NCBI GenBank assembly: GCA_011109175.1 | Contig: RDEW01000013.1 | Coordinates: 1,122,767 to 1,186,766, forward strand | DNA length: 64,000 nucleotides | Direction of reading: 5' to 3' | Source of the DNA: Dicyema japonicum | Taxonomy: Eukaryota > Animalia > Dicyemida | Shown here: piece after piece, positions 23,361-60,681 of the stretch | How positions within the stretch are numbered: position 1 is the first letter of the stretch | Layout of the letters: each line of letters starts with the position of its first letter | Made by a program: the position numbers and the translations under genes | Notes under the pieces: generated by a model | What the model saw: the letters and a program-made list of their open reading frames with translations, nothing else | Database searches by the model: none | What the model was told of the DNA's origin: nothing

Positions 23361-23421
23361 TCGATCAGAAATCTTTTGTGAATGTATCTTTGATTACCTT
23401 AATTAGTATTCTGAATATCTT

Positions 23422-24239: not shown

Positions 24240-24545
24240 TTTTAAGCACTACCGCGTTGCCATAAGCACGTAAAATGCCTAGGGTTTGGCTCGTACAGAA
24301 CACACACTTTATTTAAGTAAAGAACAGTTACTATAACTGATCGTAGAGGGAGAACCAAGGAATGCTCTTCACTTCCTTTTTTTGTGTGTATGTCCTTTTG
24401 ACTAACCAGTTCCGCAGTGAATCTCCACTGATGACAGCGTCACTCGTCAAGCCCTTTCCGCATCGTAGATGCGTGGAACCTTCCACCAGGTGAACAGAGC
24501 GAGAACCGAACCCGTGACCTAACCACTATGCCACCCGGCAGTGTC
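24240..24545 (-). mobile_element. tRNA-derived SINE (shortened head, RTE-like tail)
   Basis: Minus strand A box TGGCATAGTGG, B box GGTTCG, core GTTCCACGCATCTACGATGC...GTCATCAGTGG; the tail differs from the other copies. Confidence 0.85.
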
Positions 24546-30875: not shown

Positions 30876-31100
30876 CTATTTGGTTTTATTCTTCAATAAA
30901 TTGTTATTATCAAAAAGAATTAACACGAATTTAGCCTTGAACACGTCTCTGGCTCATTGAGCGCATCTTTTTACAGATCGTAAGGAGAAATGCGCTCTCA
31001 ATCCTAAGAGCGGCTAGTAGCCTTTAACTATTTGGTTTTATTCTTCAATAAATTGTTATTATCAAAAAGAATTAACACGAATTTAGCCTTGAACACGTCT
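30797..31100 (+). repeat. 152-bp tandem duplication of the CRE 3' end and flank
   Basis: 30797-30948 repeats at 30949-31100. Confidence 0.85.
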
Positions 31101-31614
31101 TCAACATTTAATTCAACATGTAAACTTCTCAATGCGAAGCCACCGACAGAAAAAGTTTTCATTGACATGAAAAAGCATTCGACACTGCGTCGATTAAACA
31201 TCTCATTGCCTAAAACTACTCCACTACCAAAATCAGATTAAGATCGATATTGACCCAGAACTCCCACTCTCCAATATGTAACCTGTTCATCTGAGAAATT
31301 GCAGTCGCGAAAAGATTTATACTTTCCGAGACGCAACGTGCAAATTTTAATAAGCTAAAAAAAAAGTTTTCTTTTTAGCGGGTCTAATCAACACTAGGAA
31401 TCATAGTGAACGCGAAAGTCTGCGTATCATAATTAGCTTTTTCTTAAATTCGAAATATTGACCCGCACATGTGACGTTGTAAAGAAATCTCTCGTTTTAG
31501 GCATAATGAACTGCAATAAATTTATGGTTTCGCGTTTTGTATTTTCTGACTATTCGAACTTTCCTGATAAATTTACTAAAAAAATTATTTTGATGTCTAT
31601 AATATGACTAAATT

Positions 31615-31927
31615 GTATGATATCGTACTTTCCGAAGAACCATGTCAGTTATCGCTCCCCACAGGCAGAACACACACTTTATTGAAGCAAAGAACAGTAA
31701 TAATAGCTAATCGAGGGAGGATCAAGGTCTTCACTTTTTTGTTTTTCTTGGGTATGTACTTTTAAACTATCCAGTTGCACAGTGTTTGTCTACTGATGAA
31801 GGCGTCACTTGTCAAGCCCTTTTTAGCATCGTAGATGCGTGGAACATTCCACCAGGTGAACAACAGCGAGAATCGAACTCGTGACCAAAGCCACTTTGCC
31901 CGACACCTAACCAGTATGCCACCTGAC
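31615..31927 (-). mobile_element. tRNA-derived SINE
   Basis: Minus strand GGTGGCATACTGGTTAGG...GAGTTCGATTCTC plus the conserved core and tail. Confidence 0.85.
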
Positions 31928-32322
31928 TAAATTGTATAATCGCATTAATGAAATTTGCTAATAAAAAGCCAAATGATAAACAGGTCATTTAGTGAAATAT
32001 ACATTCAATCTTAGAAAGCATTAATAGAATAATTAGTCATTATTTTGCCTATAATACAAACATTTATATAATAAATAGTAATTATGCGTGTGACCAAAAT
32101 AGTTATATGTTTATCGAAATACAAAGTTTAGTCACTATCATTCTCAAAATATTTTGACGTCTGGCTAATTTCAGAAGCTATGTTTTCCTTTAGTCGATCA
32201 TCGTGGATATTTAGCGAAAGAACTCATCGTCAATTACTCGACAGGGATCAAAACTACATGAATTATAAACTAAATATTAGTCGACTAATGAATTTGTAAG
32301 TCATTATTATAATGGAATAATA

Positions 32323-33169
32323 TTAATAATTGAATTTGCCAATCGCTAAAGAATAATAACGTTTTCTTCTTTTATATTGTAGTATGAAAGCGATAGCAAT
32401 GATCAGGATAATAACACAAATTCCTATTAAATATTTGATTTCTAAATTAAAATTATTATTACTGAGAGGATGAGAGTTTATTTTATTTAAAGTAACATGA
32501 GTTGTTCTATAACTTTGAGTTGTAGTTGTAGTTAATTTTTTATTCAAATGAAGTGTTGACTTGAATCGAAGATCTCTTTCAAAATCACACCCGTGGGCTA
32601 AATGTCAGATACAATAATAACCTTTTCCAGTAAATATTGTATTATTATCTGTTTTAAATAGTTGCATTTTCATATCTTTTATTTTTATAGTTCCGTAATT
32701 TGGAATTGTTACAACTATTTCACTGCAGTTATAATAACCGTTATTTAAAATTTTCGAAGCTGGAGTATACATAAATGTATGACGTGAAATCAATGTTAAT
32801 TCCCAGAAAACAAATATTTTATTCGATACAATGTTAAATAATATTCTGAATCTTATATCATTTTTAATCCATTTAAGGTGACCAAATAAATGTTCACTAA
32901 AATAATAATCAAATGATGCGTCGATTAAATTATCATTTTTATTCTTTTATTAAATAAAATGTGATTACAGTATTATTAATTTTGTGTTCAACTTCTATTA
33001 TTCCACTGAATAACGATACAACTTTATCGTTCTTTACTCCACCCCACAAAGGTACATCATCATACAACTTTTCAAAAGTATCAACATTCCTCAACACATC
33101 TGTATTGCATACTAAACACGTATATATTCCTATTATTAATTTATTTTGTAAACCTAGTAATTGGAACAT
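32323..33169 (-). CDS. LAMP-like type I membrane glycoprotein, class A (257 aa), copy 1
   Basis: Introns 33130-33153, 32944-32968, 32598-32621 (24/25/24 nt) give a 774-nt open CDS: hydrophobic N-terminus MFQLLGIYTCLVC, LAMP-like GYYNC...IKDMKMQLF...FTGKAHGCD, Thr-rich stalk, TM helix, tail KRRKRYYSLAIGKFNY. The gene model is better supported than the LAMP assignment. Confidence 0.78.
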
Positions 33170-33314
33170 TCTCACAGCAATTGTTCTAATTTAAATCAAA
33201 AATTATTTAAATTAAATAGAAACAAATTTAAATAAAATAAAGATTAATTTTTAATTGTTTGATAAATATTATGTGACATACTGGATTGATTAAGAAATGA
33301 ATATTTATATGCAG

Positions 33315-34698
33315 AGTTTTTCAATCAGAAGGGACCCTAGAATTCAAAGAGTATCTTGATACCTGTACAGAAGGCGAATAAACCAAGATCTAAGGTGGAG
33401 AACCTCCGTCCGGTCATATTAATGAATTCACTTCGGAAAATTCTGGCGAACATAACATTACAAAGGATGGAAGGACGCCTAGATACTTTTCTGTCGCTAT
33501 ACCACAGCGGATTCCGAAAAGGAAGATCTACTTCCGATGTTTTGTGGTCCCACAAGTGGAGATCTGCGGCCGTTCAAAAGTTCAAAATATCTACAACCAT
33601 CCTCGGAATCGACATTTCGAGGGCCTTCGACTCTGTCGACAGACGGAGGCTAATACTGGTTTTGGAAAGTTTCCTATACGCTTCCACTGTCAGAATGGCC
33701 ACCACCCTCCTAGCTGATACTTGGCTCACTGTATGAGTCGGGGGAGCCTTGTCTCGCCGATTTGAGACGACTGCTGGCACTCCACAGGGAGACCCATTAT
33801 CACCTATACTTATTGTCATATACCTCGATGCTGCTTTACGGAAGGCAAAACCGATAATGGGTGAAAAGACAAACATTATTGCGTATGCTGACGACGTAGA
33901 CTTTATTTCAAACGACAAAATACCGCTCACCCGCTTGATGGAAGAAGTGTCCGGAAGACTAGCCGAATGGTTCCTAACAGTAAATCCGGACAAGACTGAC
34001 GAAACTGAACTCAAGAGGGAAAAAACAAGGACGGAGGAGTACTGGCGCAAATGCAAAAAGCTTGGCTCCCTCCTAGGAGACCATGAAGAAATTACGAGAA
34101 GGAAAACCCTACCACAAACTGCCCTCTCCAGATTAAAGAACACCTGGCTCCACAAAAAGGGCCTTGACATTATAACAAAAACTCGATTATACAACTCGCT
34201 AGTGAAACCCATACTACTATATAACGCTGGTACTTGGGCCTGCTCAAGAAATGAACTGAAGAGGCTTAATGCGTTTCATAGAGACCAACTACGGCATATG
34301 ATGTTCGAAAGAAGTGATACGAGGATGTCATCTAATCTTTTTTATAAGAGGACGAAGACCTCAGAAATTTCTAATGAGATTCTGGATACACGATGGAGGC
34401 TTTTCGGCCATATTCTGCGACTGGACCTAGATGCCCCCGCGAACGTAGCCATGGAGGATTACTTCATGTTGGAGGCCCCCCGTTTCCGTGGTCGCCCAAG
34501 GACGACACTGGCAGTCGTTCTCGACGAGGACCTCAAAGAAATGGGACGGCATCTTGGAAGTGGAGAGGATCTTGACTGGTTGCGCACTGCGGCTTTGAAT
34601 AGGAGGAAGTGGATGAAACTAACCAGTGATTTGCTAACTCGTGTTGCACATGCTTTGTCAAGTCCTATGACATAGCGATAAGTGCTTATAATAATAAT
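33315..34698 (+). mobile_element. 5'-truncated RTE-clade LINE with (TAA)n tail and 15-bp TSD
   Basis: NLRPVILMNSLRKILA, GFRKGRST, DISRAFDSV, GTPQGDPLSP, YADD; TSD AATATTTATATGCAG at 33300-33314 and 34699-34713. Confidence 0.95.
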
Positions 34699-35099
34699 AA
34701 TATTTATATGCAGGCATCAGCTATTGTATTCATTTCAAATTAGGGTTAAAGATTAGGATTGTGTTATGCATTGGGTATTAAGATAAGTCCACATGTCAGA
34801 TAATACTGTCTCAAATATTGTAGATGATTTAATATAAACATAGAATAAAAGTAACGTCAATATAAATGACGTTGTGACGTTTTGTTTAATCTGTTTCTGT
34901 AGAAGTGGAAACTGGATACAATTAACTAGTTTTTTTCTTTCACTTCTTTCTCAGTTTATCTTGGGTTAATAAATAATTTAAATTCATCGGTTCTGAAGGT
35001 TTATTTTAAATGAGTTTTAGGATTTCGAAAAATTAGCAGAATGGTGAAACTTCCATTTCGTTCCCCATGCACGCTTGAGATATTGTGGAGCAGTAGAGA

Positions 35100-36250
35100 A
35101 TTGAGATATTATAGCAGCAGTTGTAGAGTCAGCTATCTCAGCACTATCAGCACATGGGTTAGAACCGATTCCGTATGAATGTGAAATCATAAACGTTGCT
35201 CGGGCAGAGACGATATTGTCCGTGCTGAGGCTACGATTTTTATTTTCTCCTGGATCTCTTGATCACCCGAATCGAAATCGCAATTTCTTTCTGGTATCCT
35301 CTATACGGTAGTAACATATCCAACCCTGGAAAAGAAAAATGCATTTTTTGATGACTGCCTTTCTATCTTCGACATAAGCTTCCAGTCTTCTCACACGGCA
35401 GATCCTAAGCTATTTTTTCTGATCGGACGCTGAACCAGTGGCATGCATGGCTCGGAAAGTCTGGACGCGATTGAGTGTTAGATTCCCTAAGAACGCTAAT
35501 AAAAAACGAGAATGGGACAAGCTTTTATTATCAAAGATCATAGAAGAGATAAAACCTGTGTTTGATCAGCATCTACTGGCTTGTCTGGATTCTGCATCGA
35601 CGAACGAAAGTAGTGTCTGTTTCAGTATTACCATGCACTTCACTTGGGACACTTTTGGATGACGACGCAAACGAGGGTTGGGGATTTCGTACGCCTCGAA
35701 ATAGATGTTTGCACGATACATCGCTGAAAATTTGAAAGAATGGTCCACACGAAAAGTCTTCAGCTATTTCCTGCCGGAGGAGTGCTAGAAGGAGTCCAAT
35801 ACACGCTGCAATCTACGAAGCTATTGTTGGGGAATTGATGCTGCTGGATCTCCTGTCCAATTAAAGCCACCCGGACTCGACCCATCCAACCAAAGACCGG
35901 ACGAAACAACTCTTTTCCCATGGGAATGCTGTAGATACCAAGGACGCCACCTCTGTGGATAGCATCTCTCTTCAATTTTGTTATGCCAGCAACTAACCCA
36001 GGCTTTTCTTTGGAGAAGGCTGAAATCCTAAAGATGAGGAAATACGTATGTCTCTGTTAACAGTTTATCTTTGAACCAGTGGCTGTGGGAACGTCAGGAA
36101 TCATAGGTAGCAGGTCACTTGTCCTATTTAACAGAATCGGTTCCCTCATTGCAAAAAATAATTGGAGACAAAAGAGCTGGCACATTGAGCGCACTTTTTT
36201 TGCAGATCATCAGGGGAATTGCTTTCTCGATTATAAGAGCACCAGTAGTT
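35100..36250 (+). mobile_element. Old CRE-clade 3' relic (also at ~44080-44770 and ~49380-50560)
   Basis: Homologous to 29250-30870, e.g. CTGAACCAGTGGCATGCATGGCTC and TTTGAACCAGTGGCTGTGG. Confidence 0.8.
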
Positions 36251-36391
36251 GTTAACTGTTAGTTTTTGCATTAACCTGTTTTTATTTAAAAAAGAATGAA
36301 GTCACTTAATTAGTCCAGCTAATATGAAAAAATAGTGAATGAACCCAATATTATTAAAACCCAAAATACCCGATAATTAATTATGAAGTAA

Positions 36392-37299
36392 CTATAATTG
36401 AGAATATCTTCTGTTATATTTAAACGAGAAAATAATAGTAACAATCAATGAGAATGAAACAGTTACAACTAGAGCTATTATATATTTGTTTTCTAAATTT
36501 AAATTAATATTACTGAAGGCATCAAAGTATGTTAAAATTCGAGTACTATGAGTCGTAATAGTCTTTAATTTCGTACTTAAAGGAACATGTGATGTTAATT
36601 TTTTTGATTTGAATTCTACAAATTATATTTTATAGTACTTCTTATATGACTATGAGTTGTAGTTAATTCTGTATTCAAAAGGAGTGGTGAATTGAATCGG
36701 AGATCTCTTTCAAAATCACATCCCTGGGCTAAATATCAGTTAAAATAATTACCATTTCCTGTAAATATTTTATTATTATCTGTTTTAAAAAGTTGCATTT
36801 TCATATTTTTATTTTTATAGTTCCGTAATTAGGAATTGTTACAACTATTTCACTGCAGTTATAATAACCGTTATTTAAAATTTTCGAAGATGGAGTAAAC
36901 ATAAATGTACGACGTGATATCAATGTTAATTCCCAGGAAACAGATATTTTATTCGATACAATGTTAAATAATATTCTGAAACTTATATCATTTTTAATCC
37001 ATCTAAGGTGACCAAATAAATGTTCACTAATATAAAAATCAAAAGATGCGTCGATTAAATTATCATTTTTAATCTTTTATTAAATAAAATGTGATTACAG
37101 TATTATTAATTTTGTGTTCAACTTCTATTATTCCACTGAATAACGCTACAACTTTATCGTTCTTTACTCCACCCCACAAAGGTACATCATCATACAACTT
37201 TTCAAAAGTATCAACATTCCACAACACATCAGTATTGCATACTAAACACGTATATATTCCTATTATTAATTTATTTTGTAAACCTAGTAATTGGAACAT
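36392..37299 (-). pseudogene. LAMP-like gene copy 2 (A-type 5' half, B-type 3' half), apparent 1-nt deletion in exon 3
   Basis: Same intron set plus a 23-nt fourth intron; tail KYNRRYSQL*. ATAAAAATATGA near 36805 versus ATAAAAGATATG in the other copies gives a premature TGA (could be an assembly error). Confidence 0.72.
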
Positions 37300-37789
37300 T
37301 CTCACAGCAATTGTTCTAATTATAAATCAAAAAATTATTTAAATTAAATAGAAACAAATTTAAGATTAATTTTTAATTGTTTTGATAAATATTATGTGAC
37401 ATACTGGATTGATTAAGAAATGAAAATTTATATGTAGGCATCAGCTATTGTATTCATTTTAAATTAGAGTTAAAGATTAGGATTGTGTTATGCATTAGGT
37501 TTTTAGAAAAGTCCACATGTCAGATAATATTGTCTAAAATATTGTAGATGATTTAATATAAACAAAATAAAAGTAACGTCATTATAAATGACGTTGTGAC
37601 GTTTTGTTTAATCTGTTTCTGTAGAAGTGGAAATTGGATACAAATAACTAGTTTTTTTCTTTCACATTTTCTCAGTTTATCTTGGGTTAATAAATAAATT
37701 AAATTCATCGGTTCTGAAATTTTATTTTAATTGAGTTTTAGGATTTCGAAAATTAGCAGAATGGTAAAACTTTCATTGATGAAGTTTTC

Positions 37790-38055
37790 TGCTTGCTTGT
37801 CTGTTCCTCCTCTCTCTTCCTATTAGAGTGGCGTCATGTGATTCACCTGTCTAGGTGACGCCCAGTCCCAGGCCGGCACAAAAAATGATCATTTGATCTT
37901 CCCTCTCCACTGGAGGGGTTTCCACAACTACATGTAATGGACGTCTTACCTTTTATGCTGATTCCAGATGGACTCTGTCTCTGTAGATGTGGAAACTGAA
38001 TACACTTAATTAGTAGTTTACTTTAACTTCTTTCTTGGTGTATCCGGTGTTAATA
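37790..38055 (+). mobile_element. Orphan LINE 3'-UTR module
   Basis: Reverse-complement match to 12755-13030. Confidence 0.65.
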
Positions 38056-38059
38056 AATT

Positions 38060-39170
38060 AAATTAACTTTGTGTCTTGTCGAATACTCGAAAAGGTTTCA
38101 CCCATTGCGGAAAGGAACGAAAAGAGCTATCAACTTTTCTCCACCTCTTGGGGCTTCCAGTAACTATGTGCTTCCGACTACGTCTGGTGTCATAATTGTT
38201 TTGGACTTTTGATCCTTCTATGTGGCGACATTGAAACAAAGCCATGGAGACTTAATTATAAGGAAGATTCTCGAACTTTGAGCTCTTCTCTCCGCAAATC
38301 GAGCTGACCTTGCTAACATCCTCCACGCCAACATTTTTCTTCCAAGAATACATAGTGATCCGTAAGGACAATCAGGGAAGACCAGGTGAAGGACTACTCG
38401 ATTATAAAGAACGGCATACTTTTCATTGACGTGAGTTGACGGACCTCCGATCCTTTGAGCTCAGACAATACCATGGAGCAGATCACCTTCAACATGGAGC
38501 TGTTCCCGTTTTTTGGATTAATTTGATTAACCCATACATCCTACCAAAAGCATCCTGTCCAAAATCCAACACCTCAAACATACCCCGCCTCTCAGTATTA
38601 AAGAACATTTTAATATGCGGCGACCTAAATGCCCGACACCCCGTTAGGCTTGCTTCACAATTTCTGACAGCTGAGGCGAGTTCATCGCAAATGGTCTTGT
38701 TAATATAATTATCCTGAATGACTTTAAATTAGACACAAGAATCCCAATCCCATCGTCCTTTTTAAGAAGATTTCGGAGACTCCGGACATTGCAGACAGAA
38801 ACGAAAAGTTTCAAGAACTATAAGAAGGTTGACTGGCATGGCATCTCTAACTTCGTTGATATGGAATTGGTCAACGGGCTACCATCCCATAAACGGTTCA
38901 ATAGATGAAGCCGCAAAAATCAAAAGTGTGGTTATTCAAAGGCATACAACATATTTATTCCTCTCTTTTATACCTACCCTCAATTTCCGGAGACTTACAC
39001 TCATAATACGAAAAAACCTTATGAAAACATGCTATCCGACGGAGTTGAAATCTATCGGAAAACAAAATAAAAGTATCAACAAAAACATAATAGATCACTA
39101 GGCTCAGAGATGGTGTCTGTCATCAAATGAGTCTTGAAGGCTCGAAAACCGGAGGGAGAAACTGCTTCGT
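38060..39170 (+). mobile_element. Second copy of the 2A-like/APE LINE 5' region
   Basis: Near-identical to 25185-26350 (LILLCGDIETKP, LICGDLNARHP). Confidence 0.85.
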
Positions 39171-39189
39171 ACTTGCAGAAAATATTATT

Positions 39190-39992
39190 TGTCAAGACAC
39201 CCGCACTTGTTTAAAAATATTTCATTGACCAAAAGCACAGTTGCTGAACACATTAATAAAATGTCTTTGAATTTGAAAAACCAATTAAAGGCTGAATTGT
39301 TAAAATTTGACTATTTCATTCAATTGTCGACTTTGTTGGAATTGTACAATTTGCAATCCTTTTAGAGACTGTGATTCAGATTTTAACATTAATGTAGAAT
39401 TTCTCGAACTGAGACCAATTCACGAGACTACGACAAGTTAAGACATCTTTGTTAAACTACTAAAAATTCTTTGTATATGGGCTTGATTTGAAGAAGCCTG
39501 TACGTCTTTGCTCTTAGTAAACTGCTGATATTAATAATCAGTTCAGCGAAATTCCTTTTTATACTCGATTCCTCTGGTTATCATTTCAGAAAGTTGTTAA
39601 AAGATTTTATTTGTTGGAATACTTGCTTTCCTTTCATATCTTCCTGGAAAGTTTAAAAAAATTCAAAAATTTGCGACGAAAAATAATACTATGTTGGGTT
39701 CGACATATGTTTTTGTACAACTTCTATTTATGAAATTGACAAAAACTGGTCAAAAAGCAAGACTCACTGATGAAAAATTTATCCGCTTAATAAAAGTCGG
39801 AACCACACGAATGGCTGCGCCCGACATATCAAAAATTGTATCCAAAAAAAAAATTAAAGGGTGTTGATTAAATAATTAAGTTTCTCTTATTTTGTTTTTT
39901 ATTAAAATATATTTTAATACATATCAGAACTAATCTTCCCTTGATAAGAAATTATTATAAATGCGGCCCTCGAAGAAAATGAGTTTGACACC
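39190..39992 (+). mobile_element. Internally deleted SPIN/Charlie-like hAT relic with right TIR
   Basis: LKNQLKAE..KFDYF..., FLELRPIHETT, MLGSTY..., RLTD; GCGGCCCTCGAAGAAAATGAGTTTGACACC end at 39963-39992. Confidence 0.7.
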
Positions 39993-40699
39993 TTTTTTAG
40001 GCTCATTCTTCGCAGGTCCTGAAAGCCGCCGATTAACTGAAAAACTCAAACATGTCGGGCCATAATTCTCGATGTCTCAACAGAGATTGGCTGAAAACCG
40101 ACGGGTACTTGCTCTTTGGAATCTTTCAACAAGAAAGTCATCTTAGAACTCACGCGCAACGATGAATGACGCACTTTAACTATCCATGTTGAAACTATTT
40201 TTGTCCAACAACAGCCTGCCGCCAAGAGTAGTCATGTATTCATCAGTTAAAAAACAGCCTGGGCAGAACTCACACTTTATCCAAGGCATTGAAAATGTTC
40301 TTGACTTCTCGTTTTTTCTTTTTTGCTTGTGTGTGAGTGCTAAGACAATCAGCTACAGCAGTGATGAAACACTGATGACGGCATCACTTGTCAGCCCACT
40401 CGTTCTCTGTCCAATCAAGAATAAATATCCTTAATCCCTTTATTAAGCTTAACACCAGACTGTAGAACATCGACTTCGTTTCTACACGAGACAATCATAA
40501 AGTCCAGAGTTTTTTGAACTAAATTAATTTTAATTTTTTTTATTTAAAAAGTAAGTATTTTTTTATTTAAATTTATAACAGTTATTGCACGTTGCGTGTG
40601 TTTTTTAGGGATCAAGACTTCCAGGCAACGACGAGAGTAGAACATTTCCTGAACTGTTTGCTTTTGTGGCTGAACGAAATACGAAGGACTATCAGCCGT

Positions 40700-41130
40700 T
40701 AGAAATCCGTTAAATTCCTATTCACCAAAATGTTAAACAAGTCAATTGAAGCTAAACAATGTGATAAAAGGATTAACCTACTGAAAAGATTAATGAATCA
40801 ATGGAAAATCAGGAACGATCCCGTACATAAAACGCTTTACATTGAGCCATTCATTTCATATGCATGTGCCACACGGGGACCCTACATCGGACTAATTTTA
40901 GAAATCGTGACTATTCAAAATGGCTTTTTGGGGAGTCAGAGAAATGGTCTACAGACAAAAAGAACATGATACCGACAACCTTGAGGGAATAACAGAAGAG
41001 GCTTGATCAACGTGATCGGGAGACAACCTGACCTAAACGAAGCTGTTTAGGATTAACAGAAGAAAATCAATTCTACCTGAGATTTTGTCGAGATCATATA
41101 GTTTGTTTTTTAGTTTAACGATGGTCTTTG
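40700..41130 (+). mobile_element. I/Jockey-like LINE 3' fragment
   Basis: CDKRINLLKRL...YIEPFISYACATRGP; same family as 850-1290. Confidence 0.7.
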
Positions 41131-41929
41131 AATGCAGTAGTCTATTAATTTATTTTTACTTGTTTTCCATGAAAATTCATTCATGACAACGATGAAATTA
41201 AAAATTCTGTGTTATTCGCTCGATTTAGGTAGTGAGTGAAGAAATGATTGTGTCTAGACATTAAGCCAGCAGTAGGTATTGGGAGGAAAATTTTTTATGT
41301 TTCTTCATGGAAATAATTACACGGTGGCAACGCTTACTATAGCGAAAACGGACAATGTCCCCTGAGAACGTCCGTCATTGGTAGCTACGTTCCTGTTAGC
41401 CACCAGCTTCTGTCACATTGATAGGACTTGTTGGTAAATAAAGACAATATAGAAGTTGGTTTAGTCTTACATCCGAATGTTGACGAGGATATTCGACAAT
41501 AGTCTTTAAAATATCGGTTTCATACATGTGAGTGTCAATCATCTTATATTTGATTCCCTGTAGATAAACTTCAGAATTTTTAAAATTGTGTTGTTTGCAC
41601 CATCTTACATCGGTATGTTAAAAATTTAAATTTTTGAAGCATTTCTCTTTACATAAATCATGATACAGATTATTTAGCACTGAACTGAAACTTAATCACA
41701 AGAAATATGTTAGATTTAATTATAATTGGAAGAAGTAAAGAAAAGTACGGTGATGCGATCAACAAAATCGTCCTTGAGTTTCTTGTACTTATTAGTCCAT
41801 GGGAATCCGCTATTAACAATTTCCTAAGAGAAATGTCGTCAGTCACTTAGCAAACCAAAAATTATATATTTTTGTTCGTTATTGACCAAAGAACGTTTTA
41901 TTAACTAAGGTCCCGTTTGCCACACGTTT

Positions 41930-43140
41930 AGAAAATTGCTTCACTAGGCGTCTGCTTTGCGCATCTGTCCGTAGATCTTCTAGGTCTTCTGCAGATTTAA
42001 GTTTTCCTCCAATTCCATTAAGATCCTTCTTTAGAGCATGGGGAGGGTGCTTCTAGGCCTTCCTCTGAAAGATGGTTTGTTCTCATTGTTAAAGTAATTG
42101 TACATTATTATATTTGCAGAGGCGTTTATGTCCATTCTAAGCACGTGCCCAAACAATCTCCTCTTGATTTAATAATGTCGATGCTTATTGGCCTCGATTG
42201 TACCTCAGAGTATAATTTCTTACTTGAAATCTTCCTGGATAAACCTAGGCCCATTAAATTGCGTAATTGTATTCGATGAAATATATCCATTTTCTTGAGA
42301 TCTATCTTTGTGACCCCCCATGTACCCAAGTTGTACATAAGCACCGAGTTTATTTATGAATTCTATAGTCTTAATCTTAGCATTGTTTTTATTAGTTTTC
42401 GTCCTCTCAAAATCTTCTGCAATTTCTTATACATGGCAGTGGCTAGAACTCTTCGATACATCCTCACTATCACCAAATAAGGATCCCAATTTCCTTTTTT
42501 TCCTCCAACTTTCGTCAATATATTTTGATTCCCTTCTGATTCTTGTGTTTTCAGTCTTTTCCTGATTAACTCGCAGACCAATTCTTAAATTTGCCAGGGA
42601 TTTTCACTAAAGAAAGTCCAAGTTCCAGATCATTTTCTGACAAAAAATCTATGTCATCTGCACATATAATCTCCATCCGCATGCATCCTTCACATTTTGT
42701 TCTAGAGCTCTCAATGCCGCTTCCAGGTATACGACGAATGACCATCTTCCCTTATGTAGTCAAAAAATCATTATGTTGGAAAGGATTTAGTTCACTGGAC
42801 TATATGAACCAGTCTTTACTGAACACGTATATATTACTATTATTATTAAATCTAGGATCCATAATATTTACCACCTCCCAAATACCATTATTCAAGATTA
42901 CTCAATTGGTCTCAATGGTGTTGGCTTAGGCACTTTAATTACATATCAAAACACGTTTCTTGATCCCTCGCTGTGTTCACCTTCTATTATCACAACGACT
43001 AACTGGAATGTCAGATATGATCTAGCTCATGACGACAACAAAATCATCATTGCTCTATCGTCCCTCATACAATGAGGCAGACCTTTGTTAGCTATAAAAA
43101 GGCGAAATAGGAAGTTTTGAGGCAAAGTCCAATAATTGGA
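41930..43140 (-). mobile_element. Degraded RTE-clade LINE (second subfamily), internally deleted
   Basis: Minus strand ICADDI (~42660) and LMYNLGTWGVTKIDLKKMDIFHRIQLR; its 5' part matches 51830-52240. Confidence 0.7.
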
Positions 43141-44897
43141 CCAGTAGAATAGAATAATTGAATAGAATAGAATAATTGGAATAGAATGGAATAATTGGAC
43201 CAGTAGCAGTTGGCCTGCCAATATTTGGTGGACGTGGAGGTGGTGCCACTGGTGCTACTTTCATGTTCTCAAGTCGAAGGAGTTTAAAGGAGAAGATCCA
43301 CATTACAAGGGCTATATTACAAGACGAAGGAACCTATTGACTGCAAGGGATTTTTTTCAAGGCGAAGAAACGTATTACAAGTCGAATGAACTTATTCTAC
43401 AAGACGAAGGAACATATTACAACGTGGAGAAACATACTACAGGCCGATTGGACATATTCTACAAAAACGAAGGAACCTTTTGGAGGACGCAGTAGCCAAA
43501 GGGTCAAAACTCCAGATATTTTCCAAGTTGGACCTAGAACCCACACCAATTGATCCCTACATTCGTATCCGGGTCTACACGGGACTTTGTTATCCATGCC
43601 ATTGATCCTTACAGGACCTGGGACTACTGTGGATGTCATACTAGAGTGGGACTTACAGGGGGTACTCACACCATTTGTTCCCTACATTCGAATTGGGATC
43701 TACACAGGACTTTATTAACCACATCATCGGTCCCTGCAGGACGGTTTAGGACCACCGTGGAATAACATAATGGGGAAAGGGCCTACAAAAGGAGAACTAA
43801 CAGGAGATGGGCGTACTGGCTTTGTACCTACAACGTTCTGAAGATAAATTAGTAATTGGATGAAAATCAAGGATAAGTGTACCCGGATGAACAGTCCAGG
43901 CCAACCGGCGGACTGGTGAACAGTCCAGTTACCTATTCCATAACTTGTTGTTTAATTTATTTTCATTTTATTTTTTGAGGCAAAATGGAAAAATCCTTAA
44001 ATTACTTATCTATAATAAATTACTTCCACAGATATTAGTGGGCTTTTTTTTACTCTTATATTGTCGACTAACAAGAAATTAATACCCAAAGGATATATCT
44101 AGGACGAACGAAAGTGGTGTTTGTCTTTGCATTACCATGCACCTCACTTGGGACACTATTGGATGACGACGCAAACAAGGGTTGGGGTTTCCGACCGCCT
44201 CGAAATAGATGTTTGCACGATACATCGCTGTAAATTTGAAAGAATGGTCCACACGAAAAGTCGTCACGCTATTTCCTGCCAGAGGAGTGCTAGAAAAAGT
44301 CCAATACACGCTGCAATCTACGAAGTTATTGTTGGGGAATTGATGCTGCTGGATTTCCTGTTCAATTGTAGCCATTCGGACTCGACCCATTTAACGAAAG
44401 ACCGGACGAAACTACTCTCTTCCCATGGGAATGCTGTAGATACCAAGGACGCCACCTCTGTGGATAGCATCTCTCTTCAATTTTGTTTTGCCAGCAACTA
44501 ACCCAGGCTTTTCTTCGGAGAAAGCTGGGATCCCAAAGATGAGGAAATACGTATGTCTCTGTTAACAGTTTATCTTTGAACCATTGGCTGTGGGAACGTC
44601 AGGAATCATAGGAAGCAGGTTACTTGTCCTACTAAACAGAATCGGTTCCGTCATTGCAAAAAAATAATTGGAGACAAAAGAACTGGCACATTGAGCACAC
44701 TTTTTTTGCAGATCATCAGGGGAATTGCTTTCTCGATTATAAGAGTACCAGTAGTTGTTAACTGTTAGTTTTTGCATTAACCTGTTTTTATTTAAAAAAG
44801 AATGTAGTCACTTAATTAGTCCAGCTAATATGAAAAAATAGTGAATGAACCCAATATTATTAAAACCCAAAATAACCGATAATTTATTATGAAGTAA

Positions 44898-45571
44898 CTA
44901 TAATTGAGAATATCTTCTGTTATATTTAAACAAGAAAATAATAGTAACAATCAATGAGAATGAAGCAGTTACAACTACAGCCATTATATATTTGTTTTCT
45001 AAATTTAAATTAATATTACTGAATGCATCAAAGTATGTTAAACTTCGAGTACTATGAGTCATAATAGTCTTTAATTTCGTACTTAAAGGAACATGTGATG
45101 TTAATTTTTTTGGTTTAAATTCTACAAATTATATTTTATAGTACTTTTTATATGACTATGAGTAGTAGTTAATTTTTTATTCAAAAGGGGTGGTGAATTG
45201 AATCGGAGATCTTTTTCAAAATCACATCCCTGGGCTAAATATTAGTTAAAATAATTACCATTTCCTGTAAATATTTTATTATTATCTGTTTTAAAAAGTT
45301 GCATTTTCATATCTTTTATTTTAATTGTTCCGTAATTAGGTTTTGTTATAACTATTTCACTGCAGTTATAATAACCGTTATTAAAATTTTCGAAGCTGGA
45401 GTATACATAAATGTCTGACGTGAAATCAATCTTAATCCATACGAAACATACATTATATTTGATACAATGTAAAATAATATTTTGAATTCTATATAATTTT
45501 TCTGCCATTTGAGGTAACCAGATAATTGATCACTAATATAAAAATCAAAATATGCGTCGATTAAATTTTCA
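44898..45571 (-). pseudogene. LAMP-like gene copy 3 (class B), 5'-truncated and frameshifted
   Basis: Closely matches copy 5 but lacks exons 1-2 (junction with the duplicated block at ~45572) and has a 1-nt deletion near 45380. Confidence 0.78.
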
Positions 45572-45944
45572 GATTAAGATCGAGATTGACCCAGACCTCC
45601 CACTCTCCAATATGTAACCTGTTCTCTGAGAAATGCTGTCGCGAAAATGATTTACACTTTCCGAGATGGAACGTGCAAATTTAATAAGCTAAATTAAAAA
45701 AGATTTCTTTCTAGCGGGTCTAATCAACACTAGGAATCATGGTGAACGCGAGAGTCTGCGTATCATGATTGCTTTTCTCAGATTCGACGTATTGACCCGC
45801 ACATGTGACGTTTAAAGAAATCTTCGTTTTAGGCGTGAATGAGCATCAATAAATTTACGGTTTCGCGTTTTGTATTTTCTGACTATTCGACTTTGATAAA
45901 TTTACTTAAAAATTATTTTGATGTCCATAATATGACTAAATTGT

Positions 45945-46251
45945 ATAATATCGCACTTTCCGAAGAACCATATCAGTTATCGCTCCCCACAGGCAGAACA
46001 CAGACTTTATTTAAGCAAAGAAAAGTAATAATAGCTAAGCGAGGGAGGATCAAGGCTCTTTACTTTTTGTTTTTTTTCTTGGGTATGTCCTTTTAGACTA
46101 TCCAGTTCCACAGTGAATGTCTACTGATGAAGGCGTCACTTGCAAGCCTTTTTTAGCATCGTAGATGCGTGGAATTCCAAGGTGAACACAGCGAGAATCG
46201 AATTCGTGACCAAAGCCACTTTGCCCGACACCAACCAGTATGCCACCCGAC
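45945..46251 (-). mobile_element. tRNA-derived SINE (duplicate of 31615-31927)
   Basis: Same head, core and tail, inside the segmental duplication. Confidence 0.85.
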
Positions 46252-46630
46252 TAAATTGTATAATCGCATTAATGAAATTTGTTAATAAAAAAGCCAAATA
46301 ATAAACAGGTCATTTAGTGAAATATACATTTAATTTTAAAAAGCAATAATTGAATAATTAGTCATTATTTTACCTATAATACATAGTAATTATGCGTGTG
46401 ACCAGAATAGTTATATGTCTATCGAAATACAAAGTTTAGTCACTATCATTCTCAAAATATTTTGATGCCTGGCTAATTTCAGAAGCTATGTTTTCCTTCA
46501 GTTGATCATTGTGGATATTTAGCGAAAGAACTCATCGTCAATTACTCGACAGGGATCAAAACTACATGAATTATAAACTAAATATTAGTCGAATAATGAA
46601 TTTGTAAGTCATTATTATAATGGAATAATA

Positions 46631-47477
46631 TTAATAATTGAATTTGCCAATCGCTAATGAATAATAACGCCTTCTTCTTTTGTATTGTAGTATGAAAGCG
46701 AAAGCAATGATCAGGATAATAACACAAATTCCTATTAAATATTTGATTTCTAAATTAAAATTATTATTACTGAGAGGATGAGAGTTTATTTTATTTAAAG
46801 TAACATGAGTTGTTCTATAACTTTGAGTTGTAGTTGTAGTTAATTTTTTATTCAAATGAGGTGTTGACTTGAATCGAAGATCTCTTTCAAAATCACACCC
46901 GTGGGCTAAATGTCAGATACAATAATAACCTTTTCCTGTAAATATTGTATTATTATCTGTTTTAAATAGTTGCATTTTCATATCTTTTATTTTTATAATT
47001 CCATAATTAGGAATTGTTACAACTATTTCACTGCAGTTATAATAACCGTTAATTAAAATTTTCGAAGCTGGAGTATACATAAATGTTTGACGTGAAATCA
47101 ATCTTAATTCCCAGAAAACAAATATTTTATTCGATACAATGTTAAATAATATTCTGAAATTTATATCATTTTTAATCCATTTAAGGTGACCAAATAAATG
47201 TTCACTAAAATAATAATTAAAAGATGCGTCGATTAAATTATCATTTTTAATCTTTTATTAAATAAAATGTGATTACAGTATTATTAATTTTGTGTTCAAC
47301 TTCTATTATTCCACTGAATAACGCTACAACTTTATCGTTCTTTACTCCACCCCACAAAGGTACATCATCATACAACTTTTCAAAAGTATCAACATTCCAC
47401 AACACATCAGTATTGCATACTAAACACGTATATATTCCTATTATTAATTTATTTTGTAAACCTAGTAATTGGAACAT
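46631..47477 (-). CDS. LAMP-like type I membrane glycoprotein, class A, copy 4 (257 aa)
   Basis: Same span (847 nt) and intron positions as copy 1; spliced frame open; tail KRRRRYYSLAIGKFNY. Confidence 0.78.
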
Positions 47478-47624
47478 TCTCACAGCAATTGTTCTAATTT
47501 TAAATCAAATAATTATTTAAATTAAATAGAAACAAATTTAAATAAAATAAAGATTAATTTTTAATTGTTTGATAAATATTATGTGACATACTGGATTGAT
47601 TAAGAAATGAATATTTATATGCAG

Positions 47625-49004
47625 AGTTTTTCAATCAGAAGGGACCCTAGAATTCAAAGAGTATCTTGATACCTGTACAGAAGGCGAATAAACCAAGATC
47701 TAAGGTGGAGAACCTCCGTCCGGTCATATTAATGAATTCACTTCGGAAAATTCTGGCGAACATAACATTACAAAGGATGGAAGGACGCCTAGATACTTTT
47801 CTGTCGCTATACCACAGCGGATTCTGAAAAGGAAGATCTACTTCCGATGTTTTGTGGTCCCACAAGTGGAGATCTGCGGCCGTTCAAAAGTTCAAAATAT
47901 CTACAACCATCCTCGGAATCGACATTTCGAGGGCCTTCGACTCTGTCGACAGACGGAGGCTAATACTGGTTTTGGAAAGTTTCCTAGACGCTTCCACTGT
48001 CAGAATGGCCACCACCCTCCTAGCTGATACTTGACTCACTGTATGAGTCGGGGAGCCTTGTCTCGCCGATTTGAGACGACTGCTGGCACTCCAGGGAGAC
48101 CCATTATCACCTATACTTTTTGTCATATACCTTGAAGCTGCTTTACGGAAGGCAAAACCGATAATGGGTGAAAAGACAAACATTATTGCGTATGCTGACG
48201 ACGTAGACTTTATTTCAAACGACAAAATACCGCTCACCCGCTTGATGGAAGAAGTGTCTGGATGACTAGCCGAATGGTTCCTAACAGTAAATCCGGACAA
48301 GACTGACGAAACTGAACTCAAGAGGGAAAAAACAAGGACGGAGGAGTACTGGCGCAAATGCAAAAAGCTTGGCTCCCTCCTAGGAGACCATGAAGAAATT
48401 ACGAGAAGGAAAACCCTAGCACAAACTGCCCTCTCCAGATTAAAGAACACCTGGCTCCACAAAAAGGGCCTTGACATTATAACAAAAACTCGATTATACA
48501 ACTCGCTAGTGAAACCCATACTACTGTATAACGCTGGTACTTGGGCCTGCTCAAGAAATGAACTGAGAGGCTTAATGCGTTTCATAGAGACCAACTACGG
48601 CATATGATGTTCGAAAGAAGTGATACGAGGATGTCATCTAATCTTTTTTATAAGAGGACGAAGACCTCAGAAATTTCTAATGAGATTCTGGATACACGAT
48701 GGAGGCTTTTCGGCCATATTCTGCGACTGGACCTAGATGCCCCGCGAAACGTAGCCATGGAGAATTACTTCATGTTGGAGGCCCCCCGTTTCCGTGGTCG
48801 CCCAAGGACGACACTGGCAGTCGTTCTCGACGAGGACCTCAAAGAAATGGGACGGCATCTTGGAAGTGGAGAGGATCTTGACTGGTTGCGCACTGCGGCT
48901 TTGAATAGGAGGAAGTGGATGAAACTAACCAGTGATTTGCTAACTCGTGTTGCACCTGCTTTGTCAAGTCCTATGACATAGCGATAAGTGTTTATAATAA
49001 TAAT
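47625..49004 (+). mobile_element. Duplicate of the truncated RTE with the same 15-bp TSD
   Basis: TSD AATATTTATATGCAG at 47610-47624 and 49005-49019; a few private stops and indels. Confidence 0.93.
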
Positions 49005-50695
49005 AATATTTATATGCAGGCATCAGCTATTGCATTCATTTCAAATTAGGGTTAAAGATTAGGATTGTGTTATGCATTGGGTATTAAGATAAGTCCACAT
49101 GTCAGATAATACTGTCTCAAATATTGTAGATGATTTAATATAAACATAGAATAAAAGTAACGTCAATATAAATGACGTTGTGACGTTTTGTTTAATCTGT
49201 TTCTGTAGAAGTGGAAACTGGATACAATTAACTAGTTTTTTTCTTTCACTTCTTTCTCAGTTTATCTTGGGTTAATAAATAATTTAAATTCATCGGTTCT
49301 GAAGGTTTATTTTAATGAGTTTTAGGATTTCGAAAATTAGCAGAATGGTGAAACTTCATTTCGTTCCCCATGCACGCTTGAGATATTGTGGAGCAGTGGA
49401 GAATTGAGATATTATAGCAGCAGTTGTAGAGTCAGCTATCTCAGCACTATCAGCACATGGGTTAGAACCGATTCCGTATGAATGTGAAATCATAATCGTT
49501 GCTTGGGCAGAGACGATATTGTCCGTGCTGAGGCTACGATTTTTATTTTCTCCTGGATCTCTTGATCACCCGAATCGAAATTGCAATTTCTTTCTGGTAT
49601 CCTCTATACGGTAGTAACATATCCAACTCTGGAAAAGAAAAATGCATTTTTTGATGACTGCCTTTCTATCTTCGACATAAGCTTCCAGTCTTCTCACACG
49701 GCAGATCCTAAGCTATTTTTTCTGATCGGACGCTGAACCAGTGGCATGCATGGCTCGGAAAGTCTGGACGCGATTGAGTGTTAGATTCCCTAAGAACGCT
49801 AATAAAAAACGAGAATGGGACAAGCTTTTATTATCAAAGATCATAGAAGAGATAAAACCTGTGTTTGATCAGCATCTACTGGCTTGTCTGGATTCTGCAT
49901 CGACGAACGAAAGTAGTGTCTGTTTCAGTATTACCATGCACTTCACTTGGGACACTTTTGGATGACGACGCAAACGAGGGTTGGGGATTTCGTCCGCCTC
50001 GAAATAGATGTTTGCACGATACATCGCTGTAAATTTGAAAGAATGGTCCACACGAAAAGTCTTCACGCTATTTCCTGCCGGAGGAGTGCTAGAAGGAGTC
50101 CAATACACGCTGCAATCTACGAAGCTATTGTTGGGGAATTGATGCTGCTGGATCTCCTGTCCAATTAAAGCCACCCGGACTCGACCCATCCAACCAAAGA
50201 CCGGACGAAACTACTCTTTTCCCATGGGAATGCTGTAGATACCAAGGACGCCACCTCTGTGGATAGCATCTCTCTTCAATTTTGTTATGCCAGCAACTAA
50301 CCCAGGCTTTTCTTTGGAGAAGGCTGAAATCCCAAAGATGAGGAAATACGTATGTCTCTGTTAACAGTTTATCTTTGAACCAGTGGCTATGGGAACGTCA
50401 GGAATCATAGGAAGCAGGTCACTTGTCCAACTAAACAGAATCGGTTCCCTCATTGCAAAAAATAATTAAAGACAAAAGAGCTGGCACATTGAGCGCACTT
50501 TTTTTGCAGATCATCAGGGGAATTGCTTTCTCGATTATAAGAGCACCAGTAGTTGTTAACTGTTAGTTTTTGCATTAACCTGTTTTTATTTAAAAAAGAA
50601 TGAAGTCACTTAATTAGTCCAGCTAATATGAAAAAATAGTGAATGAACCCAATATTATTAAAACCCAAAATACCCGATAATTAATTATGAAGTAA

Positions 50696-51604
50696 CTATA
50701 ATTGAGAATATCTTCTGTTATATTTAAACGAGAAAATAATAGTAACAATCAATGAGAATGAACCAGTTACAACTAGAGCTATTATATATTTGTTTTCTAA
50801 ATTTAAATTAATATTACTGAAGGCATCAAAGTATGTTAAAATTCGAGTACTATGAGTCGTAATAGTCTTTAATTTCGTACTTAAAGGAACATGTGATGTT
50901 AATTTTTTTGATTTGAATTCTACAAATTATATTTTATAGTACTTTTTATATGACTATGAGTTGTAGTTAATTCTGTATTCAAAAGGGGTGGTGAATTGAA
51001 TCGGAGATCTTTTTCAAAATCACATCCCTGGGCTAAATATCAGTTAAAATAATTACCATTTCCTGTAAATATTTTATTATTATCTGTTTTAAAAAGTTGC
51101 ATTTTCATATCTTTTATTTTAATTGTTCCGTAATTAGGTTTTGTTATAACTATTTCACTGCAGTTATAATAACCGTTATTTAAAATTTTCGAAGCTGGAG
51201 TATACATAAATGTCTGACGTGAAATCAATCTTAATCCATACGAAACATACATTATATTTGATACAATGTAAAATAATATTTTGAATTCTATATAATTTTT
51301 CTGCCATTTGAGGTAACCAGATAATTGATCACTAATATAAAAATCAAAATATGCGTCGATTAAATTTTCATTTTTAATCTTTTATAAAATAAAATGTGAT
51401 TACAGTATTATTAAATTTATGTTCAACTTCAATTATTCCACTGAATAACGATACAACTTGATCTTTTTTTAATCCACCCCACAATGGTACATCATCATAC
51501 AACTGTTCAAAAGCATCAATATTCGGCAACACATCTCTATTGCATACTAAATACGTATATATTCCTATTATTAATTTATTTTGTAAACCTAGTAATTGGA
51601 ACAT
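50696..51604 (-). CDS. LAMP-like type I membrane glycoprotein, class B, copy 5 (270 aa)
   Basis: Introns 51565-51588, 51379-51403, 51033-51056, 50920-50942 (24/25/24/23 nt) give an 813-nt open CDS ending in a TM helix plus KYNRRYSQL*, a terminal YxxL typical of LAMP sorting tails. Confidence 0.82.
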
Positions 51605-51829
51605 CTCACAGCAATTGTTCTAATTATGAATTAAATCTTTTATTTAAATAAAATGGTAACTATTATTTTTTATTAAAATAAAGAATATTTTTATATTTTT
51701 TTGCTGCAATGAGATCCTCCGAACATCTTGAGATTTCGAACAAATCTGAATCTACTACTGAACATCAATAGAACTAAACCAAAACACGTGATGTAGACGA
51801 CTTTCGATGTTGTTCTCTGCCATGATGCA

Positions 51830-52240
51830 TAATATTTACTACCTCCCAAATACCAAGATTCATAGACTACTCAATTGGTCTCATGTTGGTTGCTTGGTCA
51901 CTCTTATTCATATATATCTCCCTCTGCAACTATCGCAACCATGTATTTCCAACTCACTTTCTATGACCTCAATGCTAATGACCCACACTGTCAATTGATT
52001 TAGTCCTCGAATGTTAGAACAGAACATCATTTCGTTATGTGTACTCACAATTAACAAAAAAATGTGGGACTGTTCCTGGAAATCCAAACAAGTTTCTTGA
52101 TCTCTCGATGTTTTATTTTTGCATTTAAAACATTGATTAACTTAAATATCATATATGATCTAGAACGTGACGACAACCCGATCATCATTGACATCCTCAT
52201 ACATTCAGATATCTATAAAAAGTCAGAAATTGAAAAAAAA
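51830..52240 (-). mobile_element. RTE-related fragment
   Basis: Matches 42870-43110 (CCTCCCAAATACCA..., GACGACAAC...ATCATCATTG). Confidence 0.55.
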
Positions 52241-53682
52241 TCCTTAATTTACTTCTTCATAAATAATTTACCTTTTTAGATAATTGTGGACTTTATTTTT
52301 CCTTTTTGTCGACTATAGAGAAATTAATATACAAAGGATTTATTGGGACACAATCCTACTTTAATGGTTAAAATGGTTTGATAGTAATTCATCCAAATTC
52401 TTGCTTTAGCCCTAAATGATGAATATTTTCTAGGTAATAAATGTCCTAAAAGTATATAGAATTGACTTTTAACCATCTTTATTTTAACGAACATATATAA
52501 CAACTCTTCACTGAGCCAAGCGAAAATTAATTGCTTTAGAGTGCATGCAGGGCATTCAAACGTCCAATAATAATGTCTAAGGATCCTTACAAAGTTTTTA
52601 TAAGTACTACCATCATTTATGCTTTCCTAGCTGGGTTTATGAATATCGGTCCCTTTCCTGCAGGAGCTACAGAAAAAATCACAATTGAGAACTAAATAGA
52701 GCTGATAAATTTTTTTAATACTTAAAATCAAATCAAAAATACAAGGTAACATTGAAATACGGAATTACAATATCCTCAAAAATCTCTGACCCCAATCTTC
52801 ATAATTTAACTTACTCGAATCCACTAAGAACAAACGTATCCGGAGAACTTTAACTGATATCCAAAAAACACGCAGGAGAATCTCATCTCTACAAAAGGTC
52901 ATAGCTGCATTAAAAATATACACGACTTTATGTCTACGCAGCTATAGGGACCCTCGAAGAGAACAAGATACTGGAAGCAAACCTGAGATTATTGGTTGAA
53001 GAACTGTTACTCAATATGGTTTTCAGTGTGAACTTGCGCGTATACGATAATAGCTGTTTTTTGTTTTTAATTATTATTATATAAAATCGATCTTCTATAA
53101 AAACGTGTATTTACTATGATGAACATTAATCTATTTGCTCATCCTCCTAAAATAAGGTAAATTTAAATTCGGTTTTGTGAACTTAAGTTGAAAGTTTTCG
53201 AATTTTAGAATCATTTTTTGTAATCCATTTCACAAGCAGACTTTGTACAAAACGACATCAGTATTTACTGTCTCGTCGCAAATATCATTTATTTTTTAGA
53301 AAGAAAATAGTTAACAAATAGATAAAGGTTGCTCTTATTTAAAGCCGTTTGTTCCAGAATTGAAAATGCATTTCCACTAAAGAAATGACTTAATAGACAG
53401 ACTACTTTCTCCTTTATTCTATTCTCCTTCCTTCTAAACGAACCAATAAGATTTAGCAGACTTTCTCTCAGAGTTGACTCAAGATGCGTCGCCGTTAGTC
53501 AAAATTGTCGAGACAGAAGCTATTTACACCAGTAGTTACCGGAGAGAAGAATCTGCTATCTCAGAGAGGATAGTTGTCTGGACATATCTTTTGTTTGCTA
53601 AAGCAAGTCTGAGAGATTCCAACCGAATCAGGAATCTTCCAGGTTCCAGTCATCACGCGATTGTAAAATCTGAAAATCACAA

Positions 53683-53768
53683 ATAGCTGTTTGTGTAACT
53701 GCTGCATTCACATTGATTGTCACTACTATTTTTTGTTTAAATCTAACAGAAGATATTCTCAATTATAG
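53683..53768 (+). pseudogene. Inverted 3' fragment of a class B LAMP-like gene
   Basis: IAVCVTAAFTLIVTTIF...NRRYSQL* with a 1-nt deletion, followed by sequence matching the class B 3' flank. Confidence 0.75.
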
Positions 53769-60240: not shown

Positions 60241-60681
60241 ATGTTACCTTTAATGATATCAATCGTTTCTTTAGTAATGTCAGGAAAACCACAGGTCCCA
60301 GAGCAAAGAATAGAAAGTAATTTAATTATAGTTGACTTTAATAGTTCAAGAATGTGAAAGGGATGCTCTTTCCGTTCTAATAAAGTATTCAGTTATGTGG
60401 TAGTAACTTAAATGACAGAAAGCATGTTAATGATCTCCTAAGCGAGAACCCGAGATTTGTAATGACGAATATAATAATATTAATGTATTATTATTCACTA
60501 GGGCATCTTCACGAACCTCATGAAAAATTTAAAAAAAGATAACCCAAAGACTTATTGCGAGCAAATTCCTTATATTGAACAAGCACTAGATATGTTAGTC
60601 CAAAACGAGAATGTTTCATCCAAGACATTAAAACTTTACTGGGATTGTTTGAGAAATAACGAGTCTAATCATATGAATTAG
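60241..60681 (+). pseudogene. Frameshifted paralog of the secreted protein at 63006-63446
   Basis: Same 441-nt span; MLPLMISIVSLVM, LIIVD, CERD, ICNDEYNN, YYSLGHL, TYCE, LY.DC are conserved across compensating 1-nt indels. Confidence 0.8.

Follow-up and report, generated by a model that had tools for sequence, protein, structure and literature searches.

In the genome of the parasite Dicyema japonicum, one stretch of contig RDEW01000013.1 (assembly GCA_011109175.1, positions 1,122,767 to 1,186,766) raises the question of whether a cluster of genes hidden by very short introns belongs to the LAMP family of lysosomal membrane proteins or represents a family of its own. The stretch, hereafter the window, is 64,000 nucleotides (nt) long, and the original prediction for it was an expanding cluster of LAMP-like membrane protein genes with two alternative cytosolic tails. 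Judged from its sequence, the cluster is real: its genes encode type I membrane proteins, have been duplicated recently and are concealed by micro-introns, and they appear to form a family with no homologue detectable by sequence in searches of exon pieces. The explanation favoured here is that the genes form a lineage-specific family, encode small type I membrane glycoproteins and sit in a birth-and-death tandem array; taken together with its gene models, selection pattern, duplication and proposed endo-lysosomal cycling, this account has about an even chance of being right.

Genes concealed by micro-introns

The copies were located by blastn and tblastn of the first copy against the window, followed by a five-way alignment. 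Exactly five copies were found in the window, all on the minus strand: three intact genes (A1, A2 and B2) and two broken copies (B1 and B3), together with one inverted fragment (Table 1). Thus, all members of the cluster predicted at 32.3-53.8 kb were recovered, and the copies lie inside the predicted range, although the inverted relic reaches about 75 nt beyond its end. The intact class A genes differ from each other at 11 residues. In B1, the loss of one G near 36806 cuts the reading frame short with a stop at about codon 157, marking the copy as a pseudogene or possibly reflecting an assembly error. B3 has lost exon 1, its homology beginning directly after intron 1, and an additional 1-nt deletion in exon 2 shifts its frame. 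The relic, about 160 nt long, is 88% identical (143/162) to the transmembrane (TM) segment, tail and 3′ flank of class B.

Table 1. Members of the gene array, the duplicated units that carry them and the intervening retroelements. Positions are those of the 64-kb window.
Feature	Position	Strand	Exons	Introns	Remarks and basis
A1, intact class A gene, 265 aa	32323..33169	-	33169-32969, 32943-32622, 32597-32323 (stop included)	32968-32944 (25 nt), 32621-32598 (24 nt)	alignment, spliced translation
B1, broken class B copy	36392..37299	-		37098-37074, 36752-36729, 36638-36616	
B3, truncated class B pseudogene	44898..45573	-		45258-45235, 45144-45122	
A2, intact class A gene, 265 aa	46631..47477	-		47276-47252, 46929-46906	
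B2, intact class B gene, 278 aa	50696..51604	-	51604-51404, 51378-51057, 51032-50943, 50919-50696	51403-51379 (25 nt), 51056-51033 (24 nt), 50942-50920 (23 nt)	alignment, spliced translation
Inverted relic of class B 3′ end (TM, NRRYSQL tail, 3′ flank)	53682..53842	+			1-nt gap; tblastn
Segmental duplication unit 1 (A1 + LINE + B1)	31290..37355				96-100% identical to unit 2 over most of its length
Segmental duplication unit 2 (A2 + LINE + B2)	45620..51660				counterpart of unit 1
Degenerate non-LTR (LINE) reverse-transcriptase reading frames between A1 and B1	33356..34675 (LINE 33337-35000)	+			Pfam RVT_1, E 4e-15 and 3e-10
Second, more fragmented LINE reverse-transcriptase copy between A2 and B2	47647..48981 (LINE to 49290)	+			

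Two GT..AG introns occupy conserved positions, one of 25 nt after codon 67 and one of 24 nt in codon 175, while a third GT..AG intron of 23 nt lies inside the stalk-coding region of class B only. Their removal yields uninterrupted frames of 265 codons (A1 and A2) and 278 codons (B2). Alignment and spliced translation confirm that the genes are visible only once these 23-25 nt introns are taken out, and both the GT..AG boundaries and the exact lengths are kept in every copy. Both Dicyema japonicum and myxobolid myxozoans are known to have introns of 20-27 nt whose 5′ site is reduced to ‘GTa’ (PMC13644364). The third intron is considered real because class A, which does not have it, reads in frame through the homologous NLNLE-KY-TM segment, whereas class B does so only after the removal of 23 nt. 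The locus is a clean case of micro-introns that hide genes from annotation based on open reading frames (ORFs), and one in which only one of the two paralogue classes possesses a given intron, the third.

The spliced reading frame is constrained. Shuffled coding sequences were open in 0 of 20,000 trials, and when the 123 substitutions that separate A1 from B2 were scattered at random, the frame stayed free of stops in only 0.045% of simulations. Contigs from four sequencing runs continue unbroken across introns and intergenic DNA, and intron-skipping joints were not seen among them. As these contigs pass straight through the introns, the four runs are regarded as genomic.

Retention of intron 2 has a curious outcome in class A (32598-32621 and 46906-46929), where the read-through product ends in FTGK-GYYCI before a stop codon and has Cys as residue 178, just as the spliced protein does. 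The corresponding class B read-through, GNYFN and a stop, has no Cys, so the coincidence is specific to class A and is probably due to chance.

Protein architecture, sorting motifs and the LAMP question

The protein begins with MFQLLGLQNK, followed by a hydrophobic run, LIIGIYTCLVC, that resembles a signal peptide. The ectodomain comprises about 155 aa with the motif YYNC...KMQLF...FTG..GCD; its sole cysteines are C140 (in GYYNC) and C178 (in GCD), and each protein has two to three N-glycosylation sequons. The stalk, measured from the GCDFE motif to the TM helix, is 47 aa long in class A and 68 aa in class B, and leads to a single, strongly hydrophobic helix (class A, LIGICVIILIIAIAFIL; class B, IIALVVTGSFSLIVTIIFSF) with one Gly and no Pro in each class. 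The hydrophobic leader, the one Cys-paired domain, the TM helix and the shorter class A stalk are all present in the spliced translations as first described. The Thr/Ser-rich stalk of that description does exist, but it is moderately rich at most; because Ser and Thr make up merely 26-28% of it, basic residues (Lys, Arg and His) account for 21-22% and Pro is scarce, it does not have the composition of a classical mucin stalk.

Two classes of tail can be told apart, in agreement with the original prediction. The class B tail, KYNRRYSQL, consists of 9 aa and ends, in the fashion of LAMP proteins, in a YxxPhi motif (YSQL) directly before the stop codon; NRRYSQL and the stop are kept in 3/3 class B copies and in the relic. 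The class A tail of about 18 aa ends in RYYSLAIGKFNY before its stop codon (the fuller stretch being QYKRRKRYYSLAIGKFNY), and its YxxPhi motif (YYSL) is internal, followed by an extension of 7 aa. In both classes the motif stands about 6-9 residues from the membrane.

Tyrosine-based sorting depends on the mu subunits of adaptor protein (AP) complexes, which read YxxPhi signals and thereby direct internalisation and endo-lysosomal delivery, and internal YxxPhi signals work in many proteins. In the favoured account, an intact gene of three or four exons, with introns of 23-25 nt, would encode a leader resembling a signal peptide, a domain of ~155 aa, luminal or extracellular, that is predicted to be all-beta and to hold one disulfide (C140-C178) near its C-terminus, a flexible stalk of 47-68 aa, moderately rich in Ser/Thr and Lys, and one TM helix. 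The product would be a membrane-anchored protein whose beta domain is carried outside the cell or in the lumen on the flexible stalk. Binding of the tail by clathrin adaptor mu subunits may then cycle the protein from the cell surface into endo-lysosomal compartments and back. As both classes carry YxxPhi at a similar distance from the membrane, a quantitative rather than a categorical difference in routing is expected, and the two tails would differ in sorting efficiency, not in kind. The suggestion that class A has been re-routed, for instance to the parasite surface, finds no support in these data and is therefore weakly founded, since YYSL lies roughly as far from the membrane as YSQL does.

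The parasite takes up nutrients by surface endocytosis (PMC6736024). In such a feeder, these proteins could line endocytic and lysosomal membranes and act functionally like LAMP, CD68 or endolyn, whether homologous to them or not. The variable residues 68-119, beside the constrained scaffold of the Cys loop, may form an exposed, fast-evolving face. If expressed, the family would supply this extremely reduced parasite with membrane proteins that are both abundant and lineage-specific, and that are candidates for either an endocytic or lysosomal membrane coat or the host interface.

Endolyn (CD164) and kindred sialomucin-type proteins are small type I glycoproteins with a Ser/Thr-containing ectodomain and a C-terminal YxxPhi signal for traffic from the surface to the lysosome. 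By general description the Dicyema proteins are alike in being small type I proteins with a Ser/Thr-containing region and a short YxxPhi tail. Unlike endolyn, they have an ectodomain that, as modelled, is dominated by a globular beta domain, and Ser and Thr make up little more than a quarter of their stalk.

The closest likeness proposed so far is to the LAMP family. LAMP proteins are defined by a domain of 150-200 aa with two conserved disulfides, by a luminal domain directly next to the TM helix, and by a conserved Pro and two conserved Gly in that helix (PMC3409847; Wilke et al., 2012); the first of the disulfides is described as completely conserved within the family (PMC3409847). With LAMP1, LAMP2, LAMP3/DC-LAMP, CD68 and LAMP5 (PF01299), the Dicyema proteins share a type I arrangement with one TM helix, a domain of fitting size that is all-beta in a low-confidence model, a disulfide loop of about 38 residues near the domain's C-terminus with an acidic residue after it, and, in class B, a very short tail with a terminal YxxPhi. 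The spacing in this loop, Y-x-C...Q-x-F (+21-24)...aromatic...C (+37/38)...D, is similar to that around the second disulfide of human LAMP1 and LAMP2, a likeness that serves as a lead only.

The differences are considerable. The two ectodomain cysteines allow one disulfide, and the first LAMP pair is absent in all copies, as had been noticed at the outset. The domain is separated from the membrane by the 47- or 68-residue stalk, whereas LAMP domains abut the TM helix, and the helix in either class has neither the conserved Pro nor the pair of conserved Gly. The family further departs from LAMPs in its few N-glycan sequons, in having no Gly before the Tyr of the sorting motif, in the internal position of that motif in class A, in its multiple copies and in its two tail classes.

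Searches were made with exon pieces as queries, for homology as well as for structure, which limits the power of all of these tests. In the profile search proposed to check for a LAMP domain, Pfam hmmscan of five pieces, taken from exons 1, 2, 3 and 4, gave no match to Lamp (PF01299) at E<=10. Below-threshold Pfam matches of the stalk and TM piece to TMEM154, Mid2, podoplanin and Rifin were dismissed as low-complexity or compositional matches, or as TM matches. phmmer and hmmsearch against the PDB (E<=10) returned no LAMP chain, and phmmer with the 107-aa exon-2 piece gave 0 matches among 1.84 billion cluster representatives, the query failing to match even itself, so that the library does not contain the proteins of this genome. 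A feature search of the ESM Atlas recognised little and produced nothing but random bacterial clusters. An AlphaFold2 model of the exon-2 piece, built on an alignment of six exon-2 pieces, is all-beta with a mean predicted local distance difference test score (pLDDT) of 42.7 and a predicted template-modelling score (pTM) of 0.31. Foldseek of this model against the PDB and Swiss-Prot yielded nothing below E=0.7 and no LAMP, the model being too poor for a meaningful search; the structural check thus supplied an all-beta secondary structure, but its Foldseek output was noise.

That the genes are a true but highly divergent LAMP family, which lost the first disulfide, gained a stalk before the TM helix and underwent a parasite-specific expansion, is possible though somewhat unlikely. 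The type I plan, the single luminal domain in the LAMP size range (PMC3409847), all-beta in a low-confidence model, the 38-residue C-terminal loop and the class B tail speak in its favour. They are set against the empty profile, structure-database and cluster searches, the missing first disulfide, the distance between domain and membrane, a TM helix with one Gly and no Pro, and only 2-3 sequons. The LAMP ancestry first proposed is therefore not supported, with no profile or sequence match and three published hallmarks lacking. Rather unlikely is a fuller scenario of LAMP descent, in which an originally single-copy lysosomal coat protein of an endocytosis-feeding parasite would have been amplified genome-wide, dropped its first disulfide, raised its domain on a stalk, and diversified with alternative sorting tails to form a coat at the host interface, on endocytic as well as surface membranes. 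As matters stand, the genes constitute an ordinary expanded orphan family, for which a LAMP link is attractive and unproven.

Duplication, selection and the fate of the copies

At the level of sequence, the cluster is demonstrably the product of a segmental duplication of ~6 kb that carried a class A gene, a LINE (long interspersed nuclear element) and a class B copy. Within the duplicated units the copies are mosaic. B1 has an A-like 5′ half and a B-like 3′ half, its exons 1 and 2 being 94% identical to class A and only 84-91% identical to B2. In B2, exon 2 is 98% identical to B3 and the 3′ part is 97% identical to B1. This patchwork of similarity indicates gene conversion or unequal exchange. 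The 3′ halves of classes A and B are old, with a proportion of synonymous differences (pS) of 0.32, while their 5′ halves have been homogenised (pS 0.14-0.19). Extra copies may exist elsewhere in the genome, as hinted at by the summed contig depth of exon 1, which cannot be read as a copy number, and by several contigs with loose ends in the TM region. Calling the cluster expanding gives only half of the picture; as B1, B3 and the relic have decayed, the array evolves by birth and death.

Selection has acted unevenly along the protein. Between A1 and B2, the Cys loop (residues 120-185) shows a proportion of nonsynonymous differences (pN) of 0.047 against a pS of 0.194 (Fisher p=0.013; pN/pS about 0.24). 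In residues 68-119, pN is 0.196 and pS 0.136 (25 nonsynonymous and 4 synonymous differences), an excess that is not significant (p=0.79), and in the stalk, TM helix and tail pN and pS are 0.295 and 0.320. The nonsynonymous-to-synonymous ratio of residues 68-119 differs from that of the Cys-loop block (p=0.01-0.03). The Cys-loop block is under purifying selection, while residues 68-119, the stalk, the TM helix and the tail change fast. The comparison of substitution rates that had been proposed as a check thus revealed a constrained Cys loop, but no significant excess of amino acid change beside it. The coding sequences of A1 and A2 differ at 21 of 795 nt (2.6%), with a dN/dS ratio (omega) of 0.39 on small counts.

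Several points weigh against the favoured account of a functional, lineage-specific family. The gene models have comparative support only, the sole sequencing runs being of genomic DNA. The signal peptide and the glycosylation are read from sequence, YxxPhi is a short motif that is possibly fortuitous, and the orphan status derives from a search, with a stringent E-value, of a piece of 107 aa. The coding sequences of A1 and A2 are conserved no better than the flanking LINE and intergenic DNA (98-100%), and thus recent constraint is not demonstrated. In addition, overall omega between classes A and B is 0.6-0.7 and 2/5 copies are broken.

A different function is conceivable, that of a variable surface coat or host-interface family, residing mainly in the outer membrane, with residues 68-119 as a diversifying patch and with conversion and pseudogene fragments as a reservoir of variation. 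Tandem families of surface and membrane proteins in parasites, which evolve by birth and death and gene conversion, likewise combine intact genes with pseudogenes, fragments and mosaics, set a conserved scaffold next to an ectodomain segment that varies, and have transposable elements interspersed. Such a function would suit the surplus of pN over pS (25 against 4 differences) next to a constrained Cys-loop block, the mosaic copies (the 5′ half of B1 being A-like and that of B2 B3-like), the pseudogenes and relic within the array, and the summed depth and loose contig ends that hint at further copies. It is nonetheless quite unlikely: the surplus is not significant by itself, its signal stems from a single split into two sequence types, and the conserved YxxPhi tail speaks for internalisation rather than stable surface display. 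Unlike the parasite families in question, the array is also small, carries an internalisation motif in its tails and is known from its genes alone.

The cluster could instead be decaying and non-functional, carried along by the LINE-associated segmental duplication. Two of five copies are broken and a relic lies beside them, the divergence of the A1 and A2 coding sequences does not fall below that of their flanks, much of the protein has an omega of 0.6-0.9, and the genomic runs provide no transcript support. This reading is nevertheless improbable, given that three copies, in AT-rich DNA and with 123 substitutions between the classes, still keep 265-278 codons open over their three or four exons (P about 0.0005), that every splice site and intron length is preserved, and that pN/pS in the Cys loop is far below one. 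Barely plausible is an ectodomain of the C1q/TNF-like jelly-roll type, suggested by the only PDB sequence match, to adiponectin (4DOU; ITVYMKDVKVSLFKKDKAMLFT aligned with GTIKIKDMKMQLFKTDNNTIFT), because its E-value of 0.004-0.014 is an artefact of a single-chain trimer in which one 22-residue match of about 6 bits (per-domain E-value 77-170) was counted three times, while ordinary adiponectin chains went unmatched and no exon piece matched Pfam C1q; the adiponectin match was accordingly rejected.

Retroelements and other neighbouring DNA

The window is AT-rich, with about 35% GC, and the Dicyema japonicum genome as a whole has 36.7% GC and 49% repeats (PMC6736024). In GC content and abundance of LINEs the window is closer to this genome than to that of the myxozoan Henneguya salminicola, at 29% GC. 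The LINE copies within the duplicated units, of the non-long-terminal-repeat (non-LTR) type, reach a summed contig depth 100-1000 times that of neighbouring unique DNA and are therefore members of a very high-copy family. Other fragments of LINE reverse transcriptase lie at 8615-9220 and 42126-42344, on both strands, and the window is rich in retroelement debris.

Directly 3′ of each class B copy lies a block of ~850 nt (35599-36452, 44103-44958 and 49902-50756) that is 91-99% identical among the three. It contains a minus-strand ORF of 106 aa (beginning MGRVRVALIGQEIQ) and has a depth about 10 times that of unique DNA, and may be another repeat. Just upstream of the duplicated unit, two tandem duplications adjoin each other, at 30250-30747 (2 x 249 nt, 98% identical) and at 30797-31100 (2 x 152 nt, 100%). 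The stretch from 20000 to 24000 is extremely AT-rich (GC 16-23%), and at 23365-24303 each strand has ORFs about 300 codons long; it most likely consists of low-complexity repeat DNA.

A tandem pair of genes at 59.8-63.5 kb, labelled ‘Cys-conserved secreted protein’ genes, shows no similarity to the family described here and is unrelated to it. Two ORFs of this pair, at 60520-60681 and 63006-63446, have the motifs QNENVSSKTLKLYWDCL and SQNATTNRLELYLTCV in common.

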